Source: Entomortierella parvispora E1425
Lineage: Eukaryota > Fungi > Mortierellomycota
Assembly (NCBI GenBank): GCA_020891255.1
Contig: BQFW01000007.1
Coordinates: 1,364,001-1,428,000, forward strand
DNA: 64,000 bases
Reading direction: 5' to 3'
Shown here one piece after another: positions 7,555-15,879 of the stretch. How positions within the stretch are numbered: the stretch's first letter is position 1; every line of letters starts with the position of its first letter. A program made the translations under genes and the position numbers. A model generated the notes under the pieces. It was not told the DNA's origin. It saw only the letters and a program-made list of their open reading frames with translations, and ran no database searches.

Positions 7555-8931
7555 TTATCCGGAACCACCAGAGTAGGCCTTTCCGAAGAAGATGACCTGG
7601 AGCTGATCGTATCCGGACAAGACACCAGCACCGGCAATAGCACGGAGAACGTTGGCACCGGCACCCTTGAAGAGGGACTTGTAACCCTCCTTCTGGACAA
7701 TCTGCTTGAAGGCATCGGCCGAGGACTTGTACTTGACGGCCTCACCAGAGGTCATCATCATTCTGCGGCGGACGGTATCAACGGGGTAGGAAGCGAGACC
7801 AGCCAAGTTGGTGACACCGAATCCGAGAATGAAGGAGGCGAGGAAAGATCCCTGGAGGGAAGAGGGCAACAAGGGCTTGACGGAATCGTAAAGACCGAAG
7901 TACAAACCACGGTAAATGATAATACCGAAAGCAGAGAGAGGGAAACCACGGTAAAGACCGGCAACACCATCGGTGGCAATGGTCTTCTTGTAGACATCAA
8001 TGAGACCGTTGAACTGACGGGCACCGCCGTTCTTGCCCTTGGCATCGTTGGCCAAACGGGTACGGGCGTAGTCCAAAGAGTAGACGAAGAGGAGGGAGCA
8101 GGCACCAGCGGCACCACCGGAGGCGATGTTACCGGCGAACCACTTGGCATAGCCATCGCGCTCCTTCTTGAAGTTGAACATGGCCTTGAAGTAATCCTTG
8201 AAGGCGAAGTTCAAAGCCTGGGTGGGGAAGTAACGGATGACGTTGGCAGTGTTACCTCTCCAGAGGGGCTTGATACCCTCATCAGCAATGACACGCTTGA
8301 AGCAGTCACCGATACCCTTGTAGGGGTGGGAGAGACGGCCAGTCTTGAGCATCTCATCCTGGTTCTGGAGGAGAAGCTTGATACGCTCAATGGGGGCAGC
8401 AGCGGTCTTGGAGACAGCGGCGGAGACACCACCCTGAAGAAGAGAAAAGAAACAAAAGAGAAGAGATAGGATTAGAAATCGATTCGTTTGAAGGTAAAAG
8501 GTTGTGTGAGGTTGAGGTGAGAAAAGTTGAGAAAACTGATCAGGCAGATTCCGAATCTCTTTTCAGGGTCGAGATGGTTCCGAGATGGTTCCGAGATCAG
8601 TCGAGGAGATCTGCAGGTCAACTTTGTCTGTGTCCAACGGTCGTTGTCCACTTGACTCTGCTGCATCTGTGCTGTCTCTATTCTTGATTGTTCCAGTCCA
8701 ATAAAAAAGGGGGGAGGGGGGGGGGACAAACACAGCAAGAAAGGGGAAAAAATCGATGTGGTCGTCTGACTGTCGATAGGAATGATTGTCGTTGTGATCG
8801 TCCGATCGTATCCGTCCAGGGGGCGAAGTAGAATAGAAACCAAGAGAGGAAGAGAGGCATGGGCGACTCACCATGAGGAAATCGGCAGCGAAGGCCTTGG
8901 CGTCCTTTTGCTTCTTGACGGGAGCAGACAT
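7555..8931 (-). CDS. AAC: Mitochondrial ADP/ATP carrier; exons 8931-8872 and 8433-7555
   Basis: DFLM|[51 protein letters not shown] signature, C-terminal GKAYSGGSG; 438-nt first intron (GTGAGT...TTCAG); strong codon bias. Confidence 0.98.
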
Positions 8932-9145: not shown

Positions 9146-9179
<34 letters not shown>

Positions 9180-9372
9180 GGTCTGGCATGCATGGTTCAA
9201 GGCAGCAGTCCTAGCATGTCGCGCAGAAAAGATCACCTTTCCCCATAAGACAAGACATCCTAAGCAACATCACAAACCATCAGAGCCAGCATTCCACAGA
9301 CCGCCGCAGACGACGCTTTCCTCCCCCACCTCTTTAAGGATAGCCACCTTAGCCATACCAGAGACTCAGGAC

Positions 9373-12300
9373 ATGGCTGCGCGTCAGGAGGACTCTATCG
9401 CGCAAGGCAGCACGCAGGATGGACAGGAGGGCGACTCTGGTTCACTGACAGGAGGGCAGATCACCGCCGAAAATGTCAAAAATTTTAAGCGCAAGGTCAT
9501 CAGCATCGCCAAGTTGAAGGAGGTCTTTGAAAAGAAGGAGCAAGGTACGAAGATCAACATTGCTACATTTAATCCGCGGATGTGCCCGTTGAAATTTATG
9601 ACTTTTGCTAACTTGATATGCCGTTGATATTCGCACTTCTAGAACTAAGTGGCGTCAAAAATGAACTGAAGGAAGAGCAGCAGAAGAACGCCGATATTCA
9701 ATCAGAATTGACACACTATTCCATTACAAAAGCCGAATTGAAGCAAACAGCGACATTGCTGGCGAAGCATATGAAGATTGCCGAGCAGCTGAAAGTGGAG
9801 GCTGAGGCTGCCAAACTCAGCCAGGGAATTCTCGCCAAGAGCCTGGAAGAGGTGACACAAAGATCCAAAGTAGCTGAGATCGCAAGGGCAAAGCTAGAGC
9901 ACAACACGGAGACATCAAAAACCGCATTGGAAAATCTCAAAGCAGAGTACAACAAACTACTCCACCGATCCAATGCTGTGTAAGAAGAGAGCTTGACTTG
10001 GTATGAACTGAAGAAAGGATTTCAGACCATTTTATATTCTAATCTTTGCTTTATCGACTTTTTAGCAAAAACGAGCTAACGGCCACCAAGGGTGACCTCA
10101 TGCGCTCCAAAGCAGAAATCGGAGAAAAACGGGCCTGGCTTGCAGAGCAAAAGGCACTATGGGAACAGGATGAGTCCAATCGTCATGCGGAGCGGACAAA
10201 GGAGCTCACAGATAAACTTAAGGAGCTCGAGCATCAATTGGAGGACACGGCAACAGAACACGAGGTAGAAATGGGGATGACCCAGGAGGATCTGCGAAAC
10301 ACCAAGCAAGAGCTCATGGATGCACAGTCCCGATTGGAAACGCTCGAGCAGACCATCTCAGACCTTCGATCTCAAAATGCAGAGCTGGAGCAGGAGCGAC
10401 ACTCAAAGGAAGATCATACGAACCCTGAAATGGATTGCTTTGAGGAGTTTGAAGAATTTGTGCCCGAAATCAGAAAACCCGCCCTACCAACGGTGACCAC
10501 TGCACCACTTCCCGATTCGATCACGGCGCCTACTGATGTCATCACACCTACGCCAGTACTTCCAGCATCGGATCTGACGCCATCCTCTCCTGCGCCCATG
10601 TCTGTGTCTACCCGTCGTTCTTCAAAGTCAAAGGATCCAGTGGTTTCTGCTATCCCAGTGGCGCGTGATGTTAACCAACTTCCTGGAAAGCAGCTGGAAG
10701 AAGCCCTGCGAACTATGGAGGATCTGAAGGCTCAATTTTCAATGCTCAGTTGGATTCATGGAACACAGACTGGAAGCCAGCGCATGGAAGCTCTTGAGAG
10801 CCAAGTGAAGATACTTCTGAAGGAAAAGCAGGCTCTTCAGGATGAGTTGACACGGGTCCTTGTTTCGCATCGCGACGACCGTCGTCGATCCGTAACATTT
10901 CATCCAGGGGTGGCCACTTCTCCTCCTACCTCGGTCGTTGCGTCAGTACCTTCACCTCAGGTGCCAACAGCGGCGGATACAGTGGCCAGTCCAACAACAC
11001 CGAAGGAAAAGAGAGGAAGAAAACGTAAAGTAGAGGAGGCAGATAGCACCACGACACAGTCAACTGGCAAGGCAGGAAACGAACGAGAACTCTTTTCACC
11101 AGAACTGGACGGTCCCAATTTCATGTCTGAAGACGAAGCAGCGACTGTACCCATTCATCCAAAGGAGAAAAAATCTCGTGCAACTAAATCCCCCGCTGTT
11201 GCAGTCGAACAGAAATCAAAACGCGGCAGAAAACCAAAGGCTGTTTCAAGCTCGAATTCTTTTGCTGACTTGGAGATTCGAAATATCTCTCTCAACCCGC
11301 TCGTTCCACTGATATCAGAGCCGATGACATGTAGGTGAATGGATACGGGTTGTTTACTGGAACACAAGATGCGTCGTAGCTTCTAACACGTAATCTTTTC
11401 TGTTTTTTTCTTTTTTTTTCTATAGACTTTTCATCCGTCATGGATTCGCCAATAGTGCACGACAGCGGGCCATTTACGAAAATGAACGTCATGGCGAAAT
11501 CACTGCCTCAACATTTAAACGCGCTATGCCAGGCTGTAGTCAGGAAGTCGATTGGGCTGGCCAAAGATGTTGCTGCCTATCGACAAAGCCGCGATATAAC
11601 GAAGGACGACACCGAGGACTGGAACTTAGACGGCTACAAGACGATGTCAATTTCCAACTCTCTAGAACCACAAGAAATCAACATTGTTCAGCTTGTTTGC
11701 TTGCTTGGATCGGCCTCTCCAACTGTAAGTACTGATGATGCCCGCTTTCGGTTGAATTTTTACCAATACTTAAACCCGATGTAACCTCCCACATAGATCA
11801 ACGTTCCTAAGAAAGTCGTAGCCTTTCTTTATGACAGTATCTTGCAGAAAGCAGCCTCTGGAGAAAGTCTCGAGGGCATCTGGTAAGTCGTATTTGTTGC
11901 TCACTGTTTGAATGCAATGCGGAGTGTCATTCTAACCTTGAAACGAATACTCTACTAGTGTTCTTGTTCGAGTTTTGGTCGGGATCTGTAGAACTGAAGG
12001 AGATATACGCCTGGCCCGCGTGTTGTCGTATGATCTTCTAAGGGAGCTTGATCGACCAAAGCACTCTCTCATCCTAAGCGAAGCTATTGCTAGCATATGG
12101 CCCGACGTTTTCAAAGTCGCCGAATATGTGGAAAAGGATGGTAAGTGCCCATTGCATTTAAATGCTCGTGGTAGGTCTTTTTCACGACGTTTTGCTGACT
12201 TTGCACGTCCTACATTAGATCCCAGTCAATTTTTATTGAAGGCAATGCAAGGATCGCTTGGGACACTGCAAGAGATGTTCAAGAATGAAGAGGTAAAAGC

Positions 12301-12925
12301 AATTTGCATGTATGTATTGCTGAAATGGGGTGAACTGTTGACTAACTTTCTGACACTCATTCCATAGATCTCGTTCGGATTTAATACGTTCACCAAAAAG
12401 TGTGGATGGCCAGCTTTAGAAGACGCTCCTTTCTTGGATGAGCTTGCTAAAGAGGTCATGGACATTGTGCGCTCTCCTCAGTTTGTTGAAAAGTGCAGTA
12501 CCGAGCCCGGCTTCGAGTTTACGATACGCAAAACTCTGGAGCTGGTGTTTATTCAGGGATACGAGTGGATCGAAGTGTTCACTGACTTTATAAAGCCGGA
12601 GTTCCTTGCGATGGTCTTGGACCCAAGTCGCCATACGTTTGCGATCCCACTCATCGCATCTGTAACTCGTGAAGCGCGATTTGGATCCTCAAGCACTTCC
12701 GGGTCCTCTACCAAAGATGATAACCCCGTTCGCCAAGTGTTTGAGGCCATCCTTGCCTCAGAGGCCACAGTGCAACATCAAGTTGTGTCAGCTCTGGCCC
12801 TTGTCAGTATGAGCAACGGCCAAGTCGACCGCCTTGAGAAGACGAAACTGTGGTTCCAGAACCTGGATCAGGGTGGCAAGATAACCCTGCCAGAACCAGT
12901 GCGCACTCTGCTGGAAGCAGCGTGA
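9373..12925 (+). CDS. Multi-exon nuclear protein: N-terminal coiled coil, disordered middle with AT-hook-like/NLS motifs, C-terminal helical domain resembling ICE1 (little elongation complex subunit 1)
   Basis: Introns 9545-9642 and 9980-10065 plus several more between 11330 and 12370 join the ORFs; heptad-rich 9643-10400; C-terminal RVLVGICRTEGDIRLARVLSYDLLRE...IASIWPDVF and HQVVSALALVSMS...KLWF...LPEPVRTLL. ICE1 similarity is from memory of the human protein. Confidence 0.7.
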
Positions 12926-12985: not shown

Positions 12986-13020
12986 GCGCGCGCAGTGCAC
13001 GCGTGCAACGCGCGTGCGAA
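12986..13020. promoter_or_regulatory. Cluster of MCB/E2F-like CGCG elements upstream of the MBF-type gene
   Basis: GCGCGCGC, palindrome TGCACGCGTGCA (12996-13007, MCB core ACGCGT at 12999-13004) and ACGCGCGT, about 280-310 bp upstream of ATG 13299. Confidence 0.5.
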
Positions 13021-13298
13021 ACATTTTCGTTAATTTGTGACCTCTTTTTTTTTTTTTTTTTTTTTTTCTTCTGTCTCGTGCTGGGTTGGACACACGGCCA
13101 GCCGCATTGCCCAATGCCCGCTCCGCTCTTCCATTGCTTCTTTCCTCTCTTGCTCAATCATCCAGCCTGCCATTCCCTTGTCACCCATCGTTAATCGTCA
13201 TCCATCCGTCGCCTCCCTCTACATCACATCGTATACTCAATCGTCGACCAGCCTTATCTCATCATAATCAAATACATCATCCTCTTTACCGCTTCATC

Positions 13299-15879
13299 AT
13301 GGCAGACAGCAGTGCCAGCAACATTTACACCGCAGTCTATTCCGGCGTGTCTGTGTATGAGCTCATGTGCCGCGGCATCGCTGTCATGCGCCGCCGGACA
13401 GACTCGTACTTGAACGCAACACAAATCCTAAAGGTCGCTGGAATAGAAAAGGGCAAGCGGACAAAGATCCTGGAGCGTGAAGTGCTGCCAGGCGAGCACG
13501 AGAAGGTCCAGGGTGGATACGGCAAGTATCAAGGCACTTGGTAAGCGACGCGTTCTGTCACCCTCAATCCTCTTTTCTTCTTTTCAGTCACTGCCCATCA
13601 TCTATTCATCTTCTCCTTTTGCCACTCAGTTGATCATCCCTTTTTTGGGCTTTGCATCCCCGTCCGATCCGATATTGACTTTGATGCGCCCATGTGCGTC
13701 CTTGCTTTCTATTGCGCCTTTTATTGCCTATGTGTTTCTTCAGGGTGCCCTTCCAGCGTGGCAAGGATCTGGCCAAGCAGTACAAAGTCGAGCCTTACTT
13801 GCGCACTCTCTTCAACTATGAGATTCCAAAGGGCGAGAACGATACAACAACACCTACGAAGGAGATGGTCCAAGCCGCACAAAAGGCAAGAGATGGACCC
13901 AAGATCAAGAAAGCATCCGCCTCCCCTAGAGTCAGTCCTGGACTCAAACGCGAGCGGCACTCGTCAAACAAACCCAGCGGAGCGCAATTCCATACGTCCT
14001 CAATGACACCTTCTCCCCTCCACCCATCCTTCTCCACCTCTTCACCCTCTATCCCCGCCTCACCACAATGGCCACAAGATCAGCCTCCTAGGAAGCGATT
14101 CCGAGCTCAGAACTCCCCCCCACCAATGCATCAGTTTGAGGATGAGAGAGAAGTCCTCCAGCAACTGGAACAACATGTCGCACACCCCTCACATCACTAC
14201 CACCATCATTCTCAACATGGCGATCCATACGCTGACCACCATGGTGGTCACTACGGAGGTTACGAGCCATACCACGAAGAACCGCAGTTACATGGGGAGG
14301 AAAAGTACAGAGCCATCTTGATGAGTATATTTCTAAGCGACGACCAGGATATGATTCCAGATCTCTTGACAGATCCATCGACACCTTCGGATCTGGACAT
14401 CAACTTGGTTATCGACGATCAAGGACACACGGCGTTGCATTGGGCTGCTGCGCTCGCCAAGACGACCGTTCTTGATTTGCTGGTTCAAAAATATGCAGAC
14501 ATTCGACGTGTCAACTACAACGGAGAGTCGGCCTTGATTCGGGCAGTCTTGGTAACCAACAATTTCGACAATCAGTCCTTCCCACGTCTGTTGGATATCC
14601 TCCACACGGCCATTCCTTTGGTAGATCGCAAGAACAGGACACTACTTCACCATATTGCTATTACAGCGGGAATGCGAGGCCGGGAAATGAGTGCCAGATA
14701 CTACATGGAGTGTCTGCTCGATTGGATTGCTCGTCATGGTGGAGACTTTTCATCTATTGTGGATGTCCAAGACCGGAACGGCGACACGGCTCTGACGATA
14801 GCGGCTCGTGTGGGCGATCGGTATTTGGCAAAAGCCTTGTTGGATGTGGGCGCAAATCGTGAGATTGAGAACAAAGTTGGCTTGAAAGCAGAAGACTTTG
14901 GCATGAGTGACATCAAGGTAAGGTGATTTCTCGTTTTCTTTTCATTTTGATAAAAATGGATTGTCATTAACGCTTTGTTTATTATTTCAGCCAACTGGTT
15001 CTACCAATCAAGCGGCAACACCTCGGCCTTCTTCATTTGTCTCGAGTGCAGATGCGATCCCAGTGTCAGCGGGCGGGCGTGGAAAAGAACTATTGTCAGG
15101 TAAATATTGGTCTATGTAATACAGATAGAGATGGAGCGCTGGTAAAGAAAGCTTTGTACTCACTCTACTGTTTTCGTGTGGAATGGAATCCTCTATTAGT
15201 TGTACAAAAAATGGTGGATGAACTCGATATGGAATTTTCCCGTGAGATGTTGGCTCGTCAAGGACAATTGCAGGATACTCAGGCAGTTCTTCGCCGGGCC
15301 ACTGCAGACTTGGCAGAGTCCCGTCGGACTCTTAAGCAATGTCGCGCCCAAGCTCTTCAGCTGACAGAAGCGCAACAAAAGGTCAAGAACCTGGAGCAAT
15401 CACTAGAAGAAGAAACGAAAAAGGCCAAGAGTCAAAAGGGCTACTCAAGTGCTGTACGTCCCAAGGAGGGCGAAGTTGAGGACATTGACCATCTATTCAA
15501 CGTGGCGGATATCTCTCCAGATCAGTTGGATCCGTCCATGACTACGGAGGCGCGGGCACAGCAGCAGGTAGTGTTGCTGAAGGCACGCGTTCGGGCCTAT
15601 GAACAAAATTCAAAGGAGCTAGCACAAGAGCTGGTTGATATCCAAGATCGATCGTTAGACAAGGAACTACAGTGCCGCAAGGTGATTTCGATCTGTTGCA
15701 ACATCCCTCTCGAGAAGGTGGACGAGATGCTTGTGCCTTTGACGTTGGCAGTTGAGAGCGACGGGGCTAGCTTGGATCTATCGCGGGTAGCAGGATTTAT
15801 GAGCAAAGTCAAGCAGCAGGACGGCGTGGCTTTGGCAATGGACTCTCTCGGTATGGATGTCGAGAATGGAAGACAATGA
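13299..15879 (+). CDS. MBP1: MBF/SBF-family G1/S transcription factor (KilA-N/APSES + ankyrin repeats + coiled coil; Mbp1/Swi4/Res1-like); exons 13299-13540, 13744-14917, 14991-15099, 15200-15879
   Basis: [47 protein letters not shown]|WVP; ankyrins [38 protein letters not shown]. Exact orthology among Mbp1/Swi4/Res is not resolvable by eye. Confidence 0.93.

Follow-up and report, generated by a model that had tools for sequence, protein, structure and literature searches.

A candidate fungal homologue of the little elongation complex scaffold ICE1 in Entomortierella parvispora

A conserved intron-containing gene

Analysis of a 64-kb window of DNA (the whole stretch that was examined) from Entomortierella parvispora, a soil fungus of the Mortierellomycota, identified a spliced gene of eight exons on the plus strand, at positions 9373..12925, with a product of 990 aa. 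In the spliced model the exons occupy 9373-9544, 9643-9979, 10066-11330, 11426-11724, 11797-11882, 11959-12140, 12219-12292 and 12368-12925, the last including the stop codon. All seven introns have GT..AG ends, and CTRAC-type branch sites were present in introns 6 (12141-12218) and 7 (12293-12367), the two that were inspected. The spliced 990-aa product matched the public E. parvispora protein EMPS_05215 letter for letter. EMPS_05215 is collinear with a 1090-aa homologue from Gryganskiella (53% identity), and the exon junctions introduced no breaks in the alignment. RNA support for the splicing was sought in four runs carrying the same species label at 85% likeness, and only one spurious 95-base contig piece was recovered; the seven-intron splicing of 9373-12925 is a predicted gene model. 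The 990-aa protein is encoded by a genuine gene that contains introns and is conserved.

The original prediction was made for 11959-12925 on the plus strand, an interval that runs exactly from the start of exon 6 to the stop codon and comprises exons 6-8 with introns 6 and 7. The peptides quoted in it were all present in the spliced product, again on the plus strand: VLVRVLVGICRTEGDIRLARVLSYDLLRELDRPKHSLILSEAIASIWPDVF (aa 721-771; 11960-12112), KTLELVFIQGYEW (12530-12568), HQVVSALALVSMS (12776-12814), KLWF (12845-12856) and LPEPVRTLL (12887-12913). Scanning all 64 kb of the window for Rfam families and tRNAs, in search of neighboring snRNA genes, found nothing.

Protein layout and family distribution

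An N-terminal coiled coil, a disordered middle and a C-terminal helical domain had been proposed for the protein, and this layout was reproduced by a full-length AF2 model of the 1090-aa Gryganskiella homologue, which contains helices at residues 51-103 and 119-302, disordered stretches and a folded region at 679-1090. The long helices of this model place the N-terminal coiled-coil region of the E. parvispora protein at aa ~28-285 (9454..10411, plus strand, across introns 1 and 2). At the start of this region lies a motif from the family consensus, ENVKNFKRKVISIAKLKEVFEKKEQEL (aa 33-59; 9469-9647, plus strand), which is conserved as far as Geosiphon (BLASTP E 6e-6). Pfam analysis of the coiled-coil region returned only sub-threshold matches of the coiled-coil type. 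The disordered middle is interrupted at aa ~377-443 (10685..10885, plus strand) by a second conserved element, a pair of helices or a short coiled coil, which corresponds to helices 427-450 and 454-493 of the Gryganskiella AF2 model; L470, K474 and L477 of this pair are invariant in the family alignment. Two basic NLS-like or AT-hook-like motifs were read from the P/S/T-rich disordered region (11003..11239, plus strand), namely KEKRGRKRK (aa 483-491; 11003-11029) and KSKRGRKPK (aa 553-561; 11213-11239), and RGRKRK forms part of the majority consensus of the family.

The folded C-terminal domain starts at about aa 588 (~11318, the end of exon 3), earlier than the 11959 of the original prediction. 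As modelled, this domain of ~400 aa is all-helical, with a helical extension after a MIF4G-type module. The MIF4G-like first half, whose limits were set by VIA-align and whose coordinates were mapped by homology, spans aa ~588-822 (11318..12418, plus strand), from the end of exon 3 across introns 3-7 to the start of exon 8, and includes the exon 6 motif VGICR...YDLLRE...IASIWPDVF (11960-12112, plus strand). Exon 8 encodes the terminal helical sub-domain (aa 806-990; 12368..12922, plus strand), and the Foldseek alignment to human ICE1 1911-2259 runs to the last residue. In position and length exon 8 matches Pfam ICE1_C (193 positions).

An exhaustive phmmer search with exon 8 against 1.84 billion representatives revealed ~16 cluster representatives, from Mortierellomycota and from Geosiphon and Ambispora (Glomeromycota), and reached no animal protein. 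Apart from two fragment entries, these proteins are about 950-1250 aa in length, and all are unnamed or annotated as 'hypothetical'. Homology searches from the Geosiphon and Gryganskiella regions returned only close fungal relatives. The C-terminal domain is conserved across genera with a mean column identity of 36%, and comparison of EMPS_05215 with the Geosiphon member gave a BLASTP E of 2e-25, so this conservation is not due to chance. Judged by these sequence searches, Mortierellomycota and Glomeromycota have retained the family.

Structural comparison with ICE1 and MIF4G proteins

The structure query was an AF2 model of the C-terminal domain of the Gryganskiella homologue (pLDDT 87.8, pTM 0.86), which is 65% identical to EMPS_05215 in this domain. 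Searching the AFDB Swiss-Prot set (550,129 models) with Foldseek revealed the C-termini of mouse and human ICE1 at ranks 1 and 2 (E 1.1e-4, probability 1.00, TM 0.56, rmsd ~6 Å, query residues 50-434, ~420 columns), the matched ranges being 1869-2224 of 2241 in mouse and 1911-2259 of 2266 in human; identity in this alignment was only 13%, with predicted models on both sides. The structural match expected of a fungal ICE1, as originally proposed, was thus found. From rank 3 onward, among the matches listed, TM values were 0.16-0.29 and rmsd values 15-25 Å, and the best match was not to another helical-repeat family. Analysis of the AFDB clusters revealed further matches with TM 0.59-0.62 and rmsd ~5 Å, all of them located at the very C-terminal end of longer proteins, for example F1QX51 (1136-1484 of 1491). 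The ranges matched on the ICE1 side stop 7-17 residues short of the C-terminus, and the fungal domain forms the very end of its protein, preceded by an N-terminal coiled coil and a long disordered region. Foldseek analysis of the PDB identified no solved structure at E ≤1e-3, with TM values of at most 0.29, and the ICE1 match is therefore not generic solenoid similarity; a generic HEAT/ARM solenoid was also rejected on the scores of importins, STU1, PP2A-A and others (TM only 0.16-0.29). A shape search of the ESM Atlas gave bacterial TPR and other uninformative matches. The Atlas model of EMPS_05215 is poor (pTM 0.30), and the structural matches based on that model therefore carry little weight. 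Taken together, the two top Swiss-Prot matches, the C-terminal placement and the MIF4G-like first half make it likely that this fungal gene product is related to ICE1, the little elongation complex (LEC) scaffold, as a strongly diverged homologue and probably as its orthologue.

The likeness to ICE1/KIAA0947 (human Q9Y2F5, mouse E9Q286) covers the C-terminal ~350-380 residues, which superpose on the fungal domain, the position of this domain at the very C-terminus and a long disordered middle in both proteins. Animal ICE1 also has an N-terminal coiled coil. The two differ in length, the fungal protein having 990 aa, less than half the 2266 aa of human ICE1. They also differ in sequence (~13% identity, with the fungal protein under the Pfam ICE1_C threshold), and the partners and function of the fungal protein are putative.

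Support from sequence and profile comparisons did not reach significance. Pfam scans of about 30 sequences and pieces, including exon-wise pieces, EMPS_05215 and family C-terminal domains (17 to at least 25), identified no family above its cutoff, and ICE1_C (PF25817) was not matched by EMPS_05215 as a whole, by its C-terminal domain or by exon 8. A match to ICE1_C was observed in only one of 17 C-terminal domains, that of Geosiphon (E 0.19, 11.9 bits compared with a gathering cutoff of 27 bits). It covers profile positions 15-82, begins at residues homologous to the start of exon 8 and is collinear with the structural alignment; as ICE1_C was the pre-specified family, this E value is equivalent to about 8e-6 per family. 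Sequence searches of the PDB with pieces and the family profile returned only designed repeat proteins and chance matches, and a family-profile search of a 5.8-billion-protein set, restricted by word and length limits, gave no match at E up to 10. The human ICE1 peptide strings given in the original prediction did not occur in the literature searched. The proposed relationship to ICE1 is supported by structure and architecture but not by significant sequence or profile matches, where ICE1_C reached E 0.19 at best. EMPS_05215 is not filed as a member of Pfam ICE1_C; it is classed only as a structural homologue and a probable remote orthologue.

The first half of the domain was examined with VIA-align. 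Residues ~19-265 of the model (~245 residues) superpose on solved MIF4G domains, with Z scores of 10-13.3 for 15 or more (about 20) different entries and an rmsd of 3.5-4.3 Å over 185-217 residues. The highest values included UPF2 MIF4G-III (13.3), eIF4G HEAT1 (11.8), CWC22 (11.8), Not1 (11.3), Gle1 (11.0) and CBP80 (10.7). The model contains the five antiparallel helical hairpins that define the fold, superposable on solved MIF4G domains, and no sequence match to Pfam MIF4G was detected. MIF4G modules of several of these proteins dock DEAD-box helicases. These results raise the alternative, which we consider rather unlikely, of a lineage-specific adaptor unrelated to the LEC, in which a MIF4G/HEAT module on a coiled-coil dimer would dock a DEAD-box helicase or an mRNA-decay or export factor and the resemblance to ICE1 would be convergent or at the level of the superfamily. 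In its favor, every one of the best matches among solved structures is a MIF4G domain with a role in mRNA metabolism (UPF2, eIF4G, CWC22, Not1, Gle1, Paip1 and CBP80), the sequence link to ICE1 is not significant, and middling structural scores are frequent among helical repeats. However, UPF2, eIF4G, CWC22, NOT1 and CBP80 are all in the Swiss-Prot library and none exceeded TM 0.29, compared with 0.56 for ICE1 over both sub-domains. Moreover, the ICE1 match continues ~170 residues past the MIF4G part into the extension equivalent to ICE1_C, and the layout of the whole protein is shared with ICE1. The five-hairpin arrangement shared with canonical MIF4G proteins (UPF2 MIF4G-II/III, eIF4G HEAT1, CWC22, CNOT1, Gle1 and CBP80) covers only the first ~245 residues, half of the fungal domain, at 6-12% identity and a whole-domain TM of at most 0.29, and the fungal coiled coil and disordered linker are unlike those proteins. 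Human ICE1 itself has been proposed to carry a putative C-terminal MIF4G domain that binds eIF4AIII (PMC5896957), and a MIF4G fold is therefore no argument against ICE1.

It appears very improbable that the protein is a structural coiled coil associated with golgins, the centrosome or the cytoskeleton, one that takes no part in transcription and uses its C-terminal domain for targeting: the N-terminal ~260 residues gave a sub-threshold Pfam match to HIP1 clathrin-binding (E 2e-5, 25.2 bits compared with a 28.8-bit cutoff), and Filament and CENP-F were matched below threshold as well, but such matches below curated cutoffs are typical of coiled-coil composition, the conservation of basic motifs of the KRGRKRK type points to the nucleus and the C-terminal domain specifically matches a nuclear transcription scaffold. 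The least probable reading is a subunit related to Integrator and INTS2-like in its C-terminal region, since INTS2 is absent from the top 30 Foldseek Swiss-Prot matches (INTS5 ranks 11, TM 0.20) and no Pfam INTS2 match was detected; INTS2 fragment clusters were the top language-model feature matches of the Geosiphon member and EMPS_05215 (0.90-0.92, a level that gives leads only), but their shared-feature counts of 139-142 lie below the 159-160 of the KIAA0947/ICE1_C cluster, the highest for both proteins, and the alignment of 7cun_B (human Integrator-PP2A complex) to the MIF4G-like part, at Z 7.9, is within the helical-repeat background.

Possible role and evolutionary range

In human ICE1 the N-terminus binds ELL and the C-terminus binds ICE2 and ZC3H8 (PMC5493778), and residues 1191-2266 have been reported to bind ICE2 and ELL (PMC7044329). 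If the fungal protein is an ICE1 homologue, its coiled coil would dimerise it, the basic motifs would carry it to the nucleus, and the terminal domains could, by analogy with human ICE1, dock partners whose human counterparts are ELL/EAF, ICE2 and ZC3H8, with eIF4AIII on the MIF4G-like part. Such a protein may act as a platform through which Pol II acquires an elongation factor at genes of the snRNA type, as a link to the exon junction complex, or as both. No gene for ELL/EAF, ICE2 (NARG2) or ZC3H8 was identified within the 64-kb window.

To our knowledge, the LEC and ICE1 are regarded in the literature as animal factors. The fungal host is a further difference from known ICE1 proteins, as ICE1 was reported not to be found in the fungi of an earlier survey, which sampled Dikarya only (PMC6351623). 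The structural matches from Swiss-Prot also included no equivalent from S. cerevisiae or S. pombe. The modelled domain suggests that some fungi have kept ICE1, and homology to ICE1 at the level of the fold in Mortierellomycota and Glomeromycota would place the origin of the scaffold at least at the fungus-animal ancestor.

The range of the fold may be greater still. A representative of the AlphaFold clusters, Arabidopsis EMB1611/MEE22 (At2g34780; O64742), matches the C-terminal domain with E 5e-3, probability 1.00 and TM 0.53; the superposition, one of predicted structures, is weaker than that of ICE1 (rmsd 10.5 Å). The EMB1611 gene is essential and has no known biochemical role (PMC5717279), and no description of a relationship between EMB1611 and ICE1 was found in the literature searched. 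These predicted structures suggest that the fold predates animals and fungi and extends beyond them, and since ICE1-like folds occur in non-animal AlphaFold clusters including EMB1611, the original description of the fungal complex as animal-like may be too narrow. As a tentative extension, ICE1 could be an ancient eukaryotic scaffold, with Mortierellomycota and Glomeromycota keeping a working ICE1-ELL/EAF LEC beside SNAPc-like and Integrator-like factors, a 'metazoan-type' snRNA system that would have been dismantled in Dikarya; EMB1611 and the unnamed proteins of other eukaryotic AlphaFold clusters would then belong to the same family.

If the family is ICE1, these conserved "hypothetical proteins" would gain a name. 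At 990 aa, a fungal ICE1 would be much smaller than its animal counterpart and useful for dissecting how the scaffold works, and some of these fungi are probably transformable (Mortierella alpina). The Pfam ICE1_C model misses the fungal relatives, and structure comparison detects them.

Gene model and protein layout

The segment 11959-12925 starts at the first base of an exon and ends at a stop codon. Reading outward from it and joining GT..AG introns yielded an eight-exon gene on the forward strand, with exons at 9373-9544, 9643-9979, 10066-11330, 11426-11724, 11797-11882, 11959-12140, 12219-12292 and 12368-12925. The coding sequence (2973 nt) is in frame and its 990-aa product is identical in every letter to the public protein P0041 (EMPS_05215 of Entomortierella parvispora), which places the source of the window in Mortierellomycota. 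Alignment of the spliced model with P0001, a 1090-aa homologue from Gryganskiella, ran end to end at 53% identity and left the exon junctions undisturbed. The original prediction of a gene at this position was thus borne out, and the peptides it quoted all occur in the spliced product at the places it assigned them. Four sequencing runs bearing the same species label yielded no usable evidence on splicing, and the intron positions are predicted from sequence logic and homology only. Intron 6 (12141-12218; 78 nt) is in frame and stop-free, so its retention would add 26 residues in a MIF4G-like loop with no truncation; intron 7 (75 nt) likewise keeps the frame, and the only in-frame stop within it is the TAG at its acceptor site.

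P0001 was modelled over its full length with AF2 from a 17-sequence alignment, and the features of the model were mapped onto the window protein. In P0001 a disordered N-terminus is followed by two very long helices (51-103 and 119-302), disorder, a helical pair (427-493), long disorder and a compact helical domain (679-1090). The corresponding forward-strand features of the window protein are a predicted coiled coil (aa ~28-285; 9454-10411), which begins with the family-conserved motif ENVKNFKRKVISIAKLKEVFEKKEQEL, a helical pair (aa ~377-443; 10685-10885) and a folded domain (aa ~588-990; 11318-12922). This order of coiled coil, disorder and helical domain agreed with the layout originally described, but the domain starts ~130 residues before the start of the segment to which it had been assigned. 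The P/S/T-rich disordered region contains the basic motifs KEKRGRKRK (11003-11029, forward strand) and KSKRGRKPK (11213-11239, forward strand); RGRKRK is a majority consensus in the family, which suggests that the protein is nuclear.

Comparison of the C-terminal domain with ICE1

P0001 and the window protein share 65% identity over the C-domain, and the AF2 model of the P0001 C-domain (16-sequence alignment) was confident (pLDDT 87.8, pTM 0.86). This model of a close relative was compared by Foldseek with AlphaFold models of all reviewed UniProt proteins, both sides being predictions. The analysis ranked mouse ICE1 first (residues 1869-2224 of 2241) and human ICE1 second (1911-2259 of 2266), with E 1.1e-4, probability 1.00, TM 0.56 by query and rmsd ~6 A over about 420 columns (model residues 50-434). 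Generic solenoids (STU1, importins, MMS19, PP2A-A, TOR) followed from rank 3 onward, at TM 0.16-0.29 and rmsd 16-25 A. Among AlphaFold fold clusters, too, the best matches were to the very C-terminal ends of longer proteins: A0A1X0QP43 (530-870 of 875; TM 0.62, E 1.7e-8), A0A6Q2Z6I9 (408-756 of 764) and F1QX51 (1136-1484 of 1491; TM 0.59, rmsd 5.0). No solved structure in the PDB matched the whole C-domain by Foldseek (TM 0.29 or less).

When VIA-align was used, the first ~245 residues of the C-domain consistently fell on MIF4G domains, with Z scores of 13.3 for UPF2 MIF4G-III, 12.0 for UPF2 MIF4G-II, 11.8 for both eIF4G HEAT1 and CWC22, 11.3 for Not1 and 11.0 for Gle1; Paip1, DAP5 and CBP80 were also matched. 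This fold agrees with the MIF4G domain predicted by Baird et al. in the C-terminal ~30 kDa of human ICE1, a region sufficient for eIF4AIII binding (PMC5896957). A lineage-specific MIF4G adaptor, resembling ICE1 at the superfamily level only, is an unlikely alternative: canonical MIF4G proteins in the same Foldseek library score far under ICE1, and the ICE1 match runs on through the extension beyond the MIF4G part.

The proposed likeness to ICE1 held at the level of structure (Foldseek ranks 1 and 2) but not of sequence, where the Pfam profile ICE1_C (PF25817; 193 positions, cutoff 27 bits) gave no match to the whole window protein, its C-domain or its exon pieces. Across 17 family C-domains the profile matched only that of Geosiphon, below the cutoff (11.9 bits, E 0.19). 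As ICE1_C had been named beforehand, the per-family probability is ~0.19/24736 = 8e-6, or roughly 2e-4 once the scanning of ~30 related sequences is taken into account. The match covers profile positions 15-82, and its first residues are the homologues of those that open exon 8, from where the length to the C-terminus is about that left in the profile; it is a hint consistent with ICE1 homology, short of proof. Family-profile searches of the PDB and of a 5.8-billion-protein set returned no match. Sub-threshold coiled-coil Pfam noise is the only support for a cytoskeletal coiled-coil protein, which is highly improbable. Language-model features of the Geosiphon and window proteins alike placed the KIAA0947/ICE1_C cluster top in shared-feature counts (159-160); INTS2 fragments scored slightly higher overall, so we treat the ICE1_C result as a lead only. 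An INTS2-like Integrator part, which neither Foldseek nor Pfam supports, is the least probable identity. Taken together, we consider the fungal C-domain likely to be homologous to that of ICE1.

Family distribution and evolutionary reach

An exhaustive phmmer search with exon 8 against 1.84 billion representatives returned 18 matches, two of them repeat-protein noise. The 16 genuine relatives (~950-1250 aa, two being fragment entries) are all named "hypothetical" or "unnamed", and none carries a precomputed Pfam domain. The family occurs in Mortierellomycota (Gryganskiella, Mortierella, Linnemannia, Dissophora, Podila, Modicella, Actinomortierella, Gamsiella, Haplosporangium and Entomortierella) and Glomeromycota (Geosiphon and Ambispora); between the window and Geosiphon proteins, the C-domains match at E 2e-25 and the N-terminal motifs at E 6e-6. 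The reviewed-UniProt model library covers the proteomes of S. cerevisiae and S. pombe in full, and no protein of either species lay near the C-domain fold by Foldseek, consistent with loss of an ICE1-type protein in both yeasts. A published survey whose fungal sampling was limited to Dikarya reported ICE1 as not found (PMC6351623). The present finding would place ICE1 loss in fungi after Mortierellomycota and Glomeromycota had split off.

Further cluster representatives, matched at lower quality, look neither animal nor fungal: O64742, 'Uncharacterized protein At2g34780' (TM 0.53, E 5e-3), D2V286, A0A1W0A2D0 and A0A2N9J8T1. At2g34780 is EMB1611, an essential Arabidopsis meristem gene (PMC5717279); our literature search found no paper linking it with ICE1. 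Because of these matches the "animal-like" framing of the original prediction is perhaps too narrow: judging from the models, the ICE1-C-like family may span the eukaryotes, and EMB1611 may be the ICE1 of plants.

Proposed function and genomic neighbourhood

The window protein probably descends from ICE1. It scores below the ICE1_C threshold, has less than half the length of ICE1 and occurs in fungi, and was therefore classed as a divergent variant rather than a database member. In animals the little elongation complex (LEC) has ICE1 as its scaffold. According to one review, ELL binds the N-terminal part of ICE1 and ICE2/ZC3H8 the C-terminal part (PMC5493778); another study reported direct binding of ICE2 and ELL to residues 1191-2266 and of CBP80 to the N-terminal half (PMC7044329). 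By analogy, a role in an LEC-like complex can be put forward tentatively. The fungal protein would dimerize through its coiled coil and enter the nucleus by its basic motifs. Docking sites would be provided by the coiled coil with its conserved N-terminal motif and by the MIF4G and ICE1_C-like terminal domain, so that an elongation module of the ELL/EAF type would be assembled on Pol II at snRNA-type genes, and the MIF4G part may also touch an eIF4AIII-like helicase.

No Rfam family at gathering score and no tRNA gene was found anywhere in the 64-kb window (1-64000). Upstream lies a reverse-strand gene for an ADP/ATP-translocase-type mitochondrial carrier (7558-8352, extending to ~8930; Pfam Mito_carr, E 2e-56), divergent from the ICE1-like gene; the ~450-bp region between them contains a 35-base poly(T) run (about 9146-9180). 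A second long poly(T) run (13047-13068), preceded by the GC-rich near-palindrome GCGCGCGCAGTGCACGCGTGCAACGCGCGTGC (~12988-13020), lies just 3' of the ICE1-like gene, where the promoter region of a downstream Swi6/Mbp1-type gene is placed (13299-14926, forward strand). The Swi6/Mbp1-type gene has a KilA-N/APSES domain (13299-13541) and ankyrin repeats (ORF 13694-14926). In Linnemannia elongata the ICE1-like and Swi6 genes are joined in a single public model, P0032 (1762 aa), which is named 'transcriptional regulator swi6'. As a result, genuine Swi6 (about 840 aa) and the ICE1-like family (about 1020 aa) share one 90%-identity cluster, a database artefact; the fusion of adjoining genes also indicates that ICE1-like/Swi6 synteny is conserved across Mortierellaceae.
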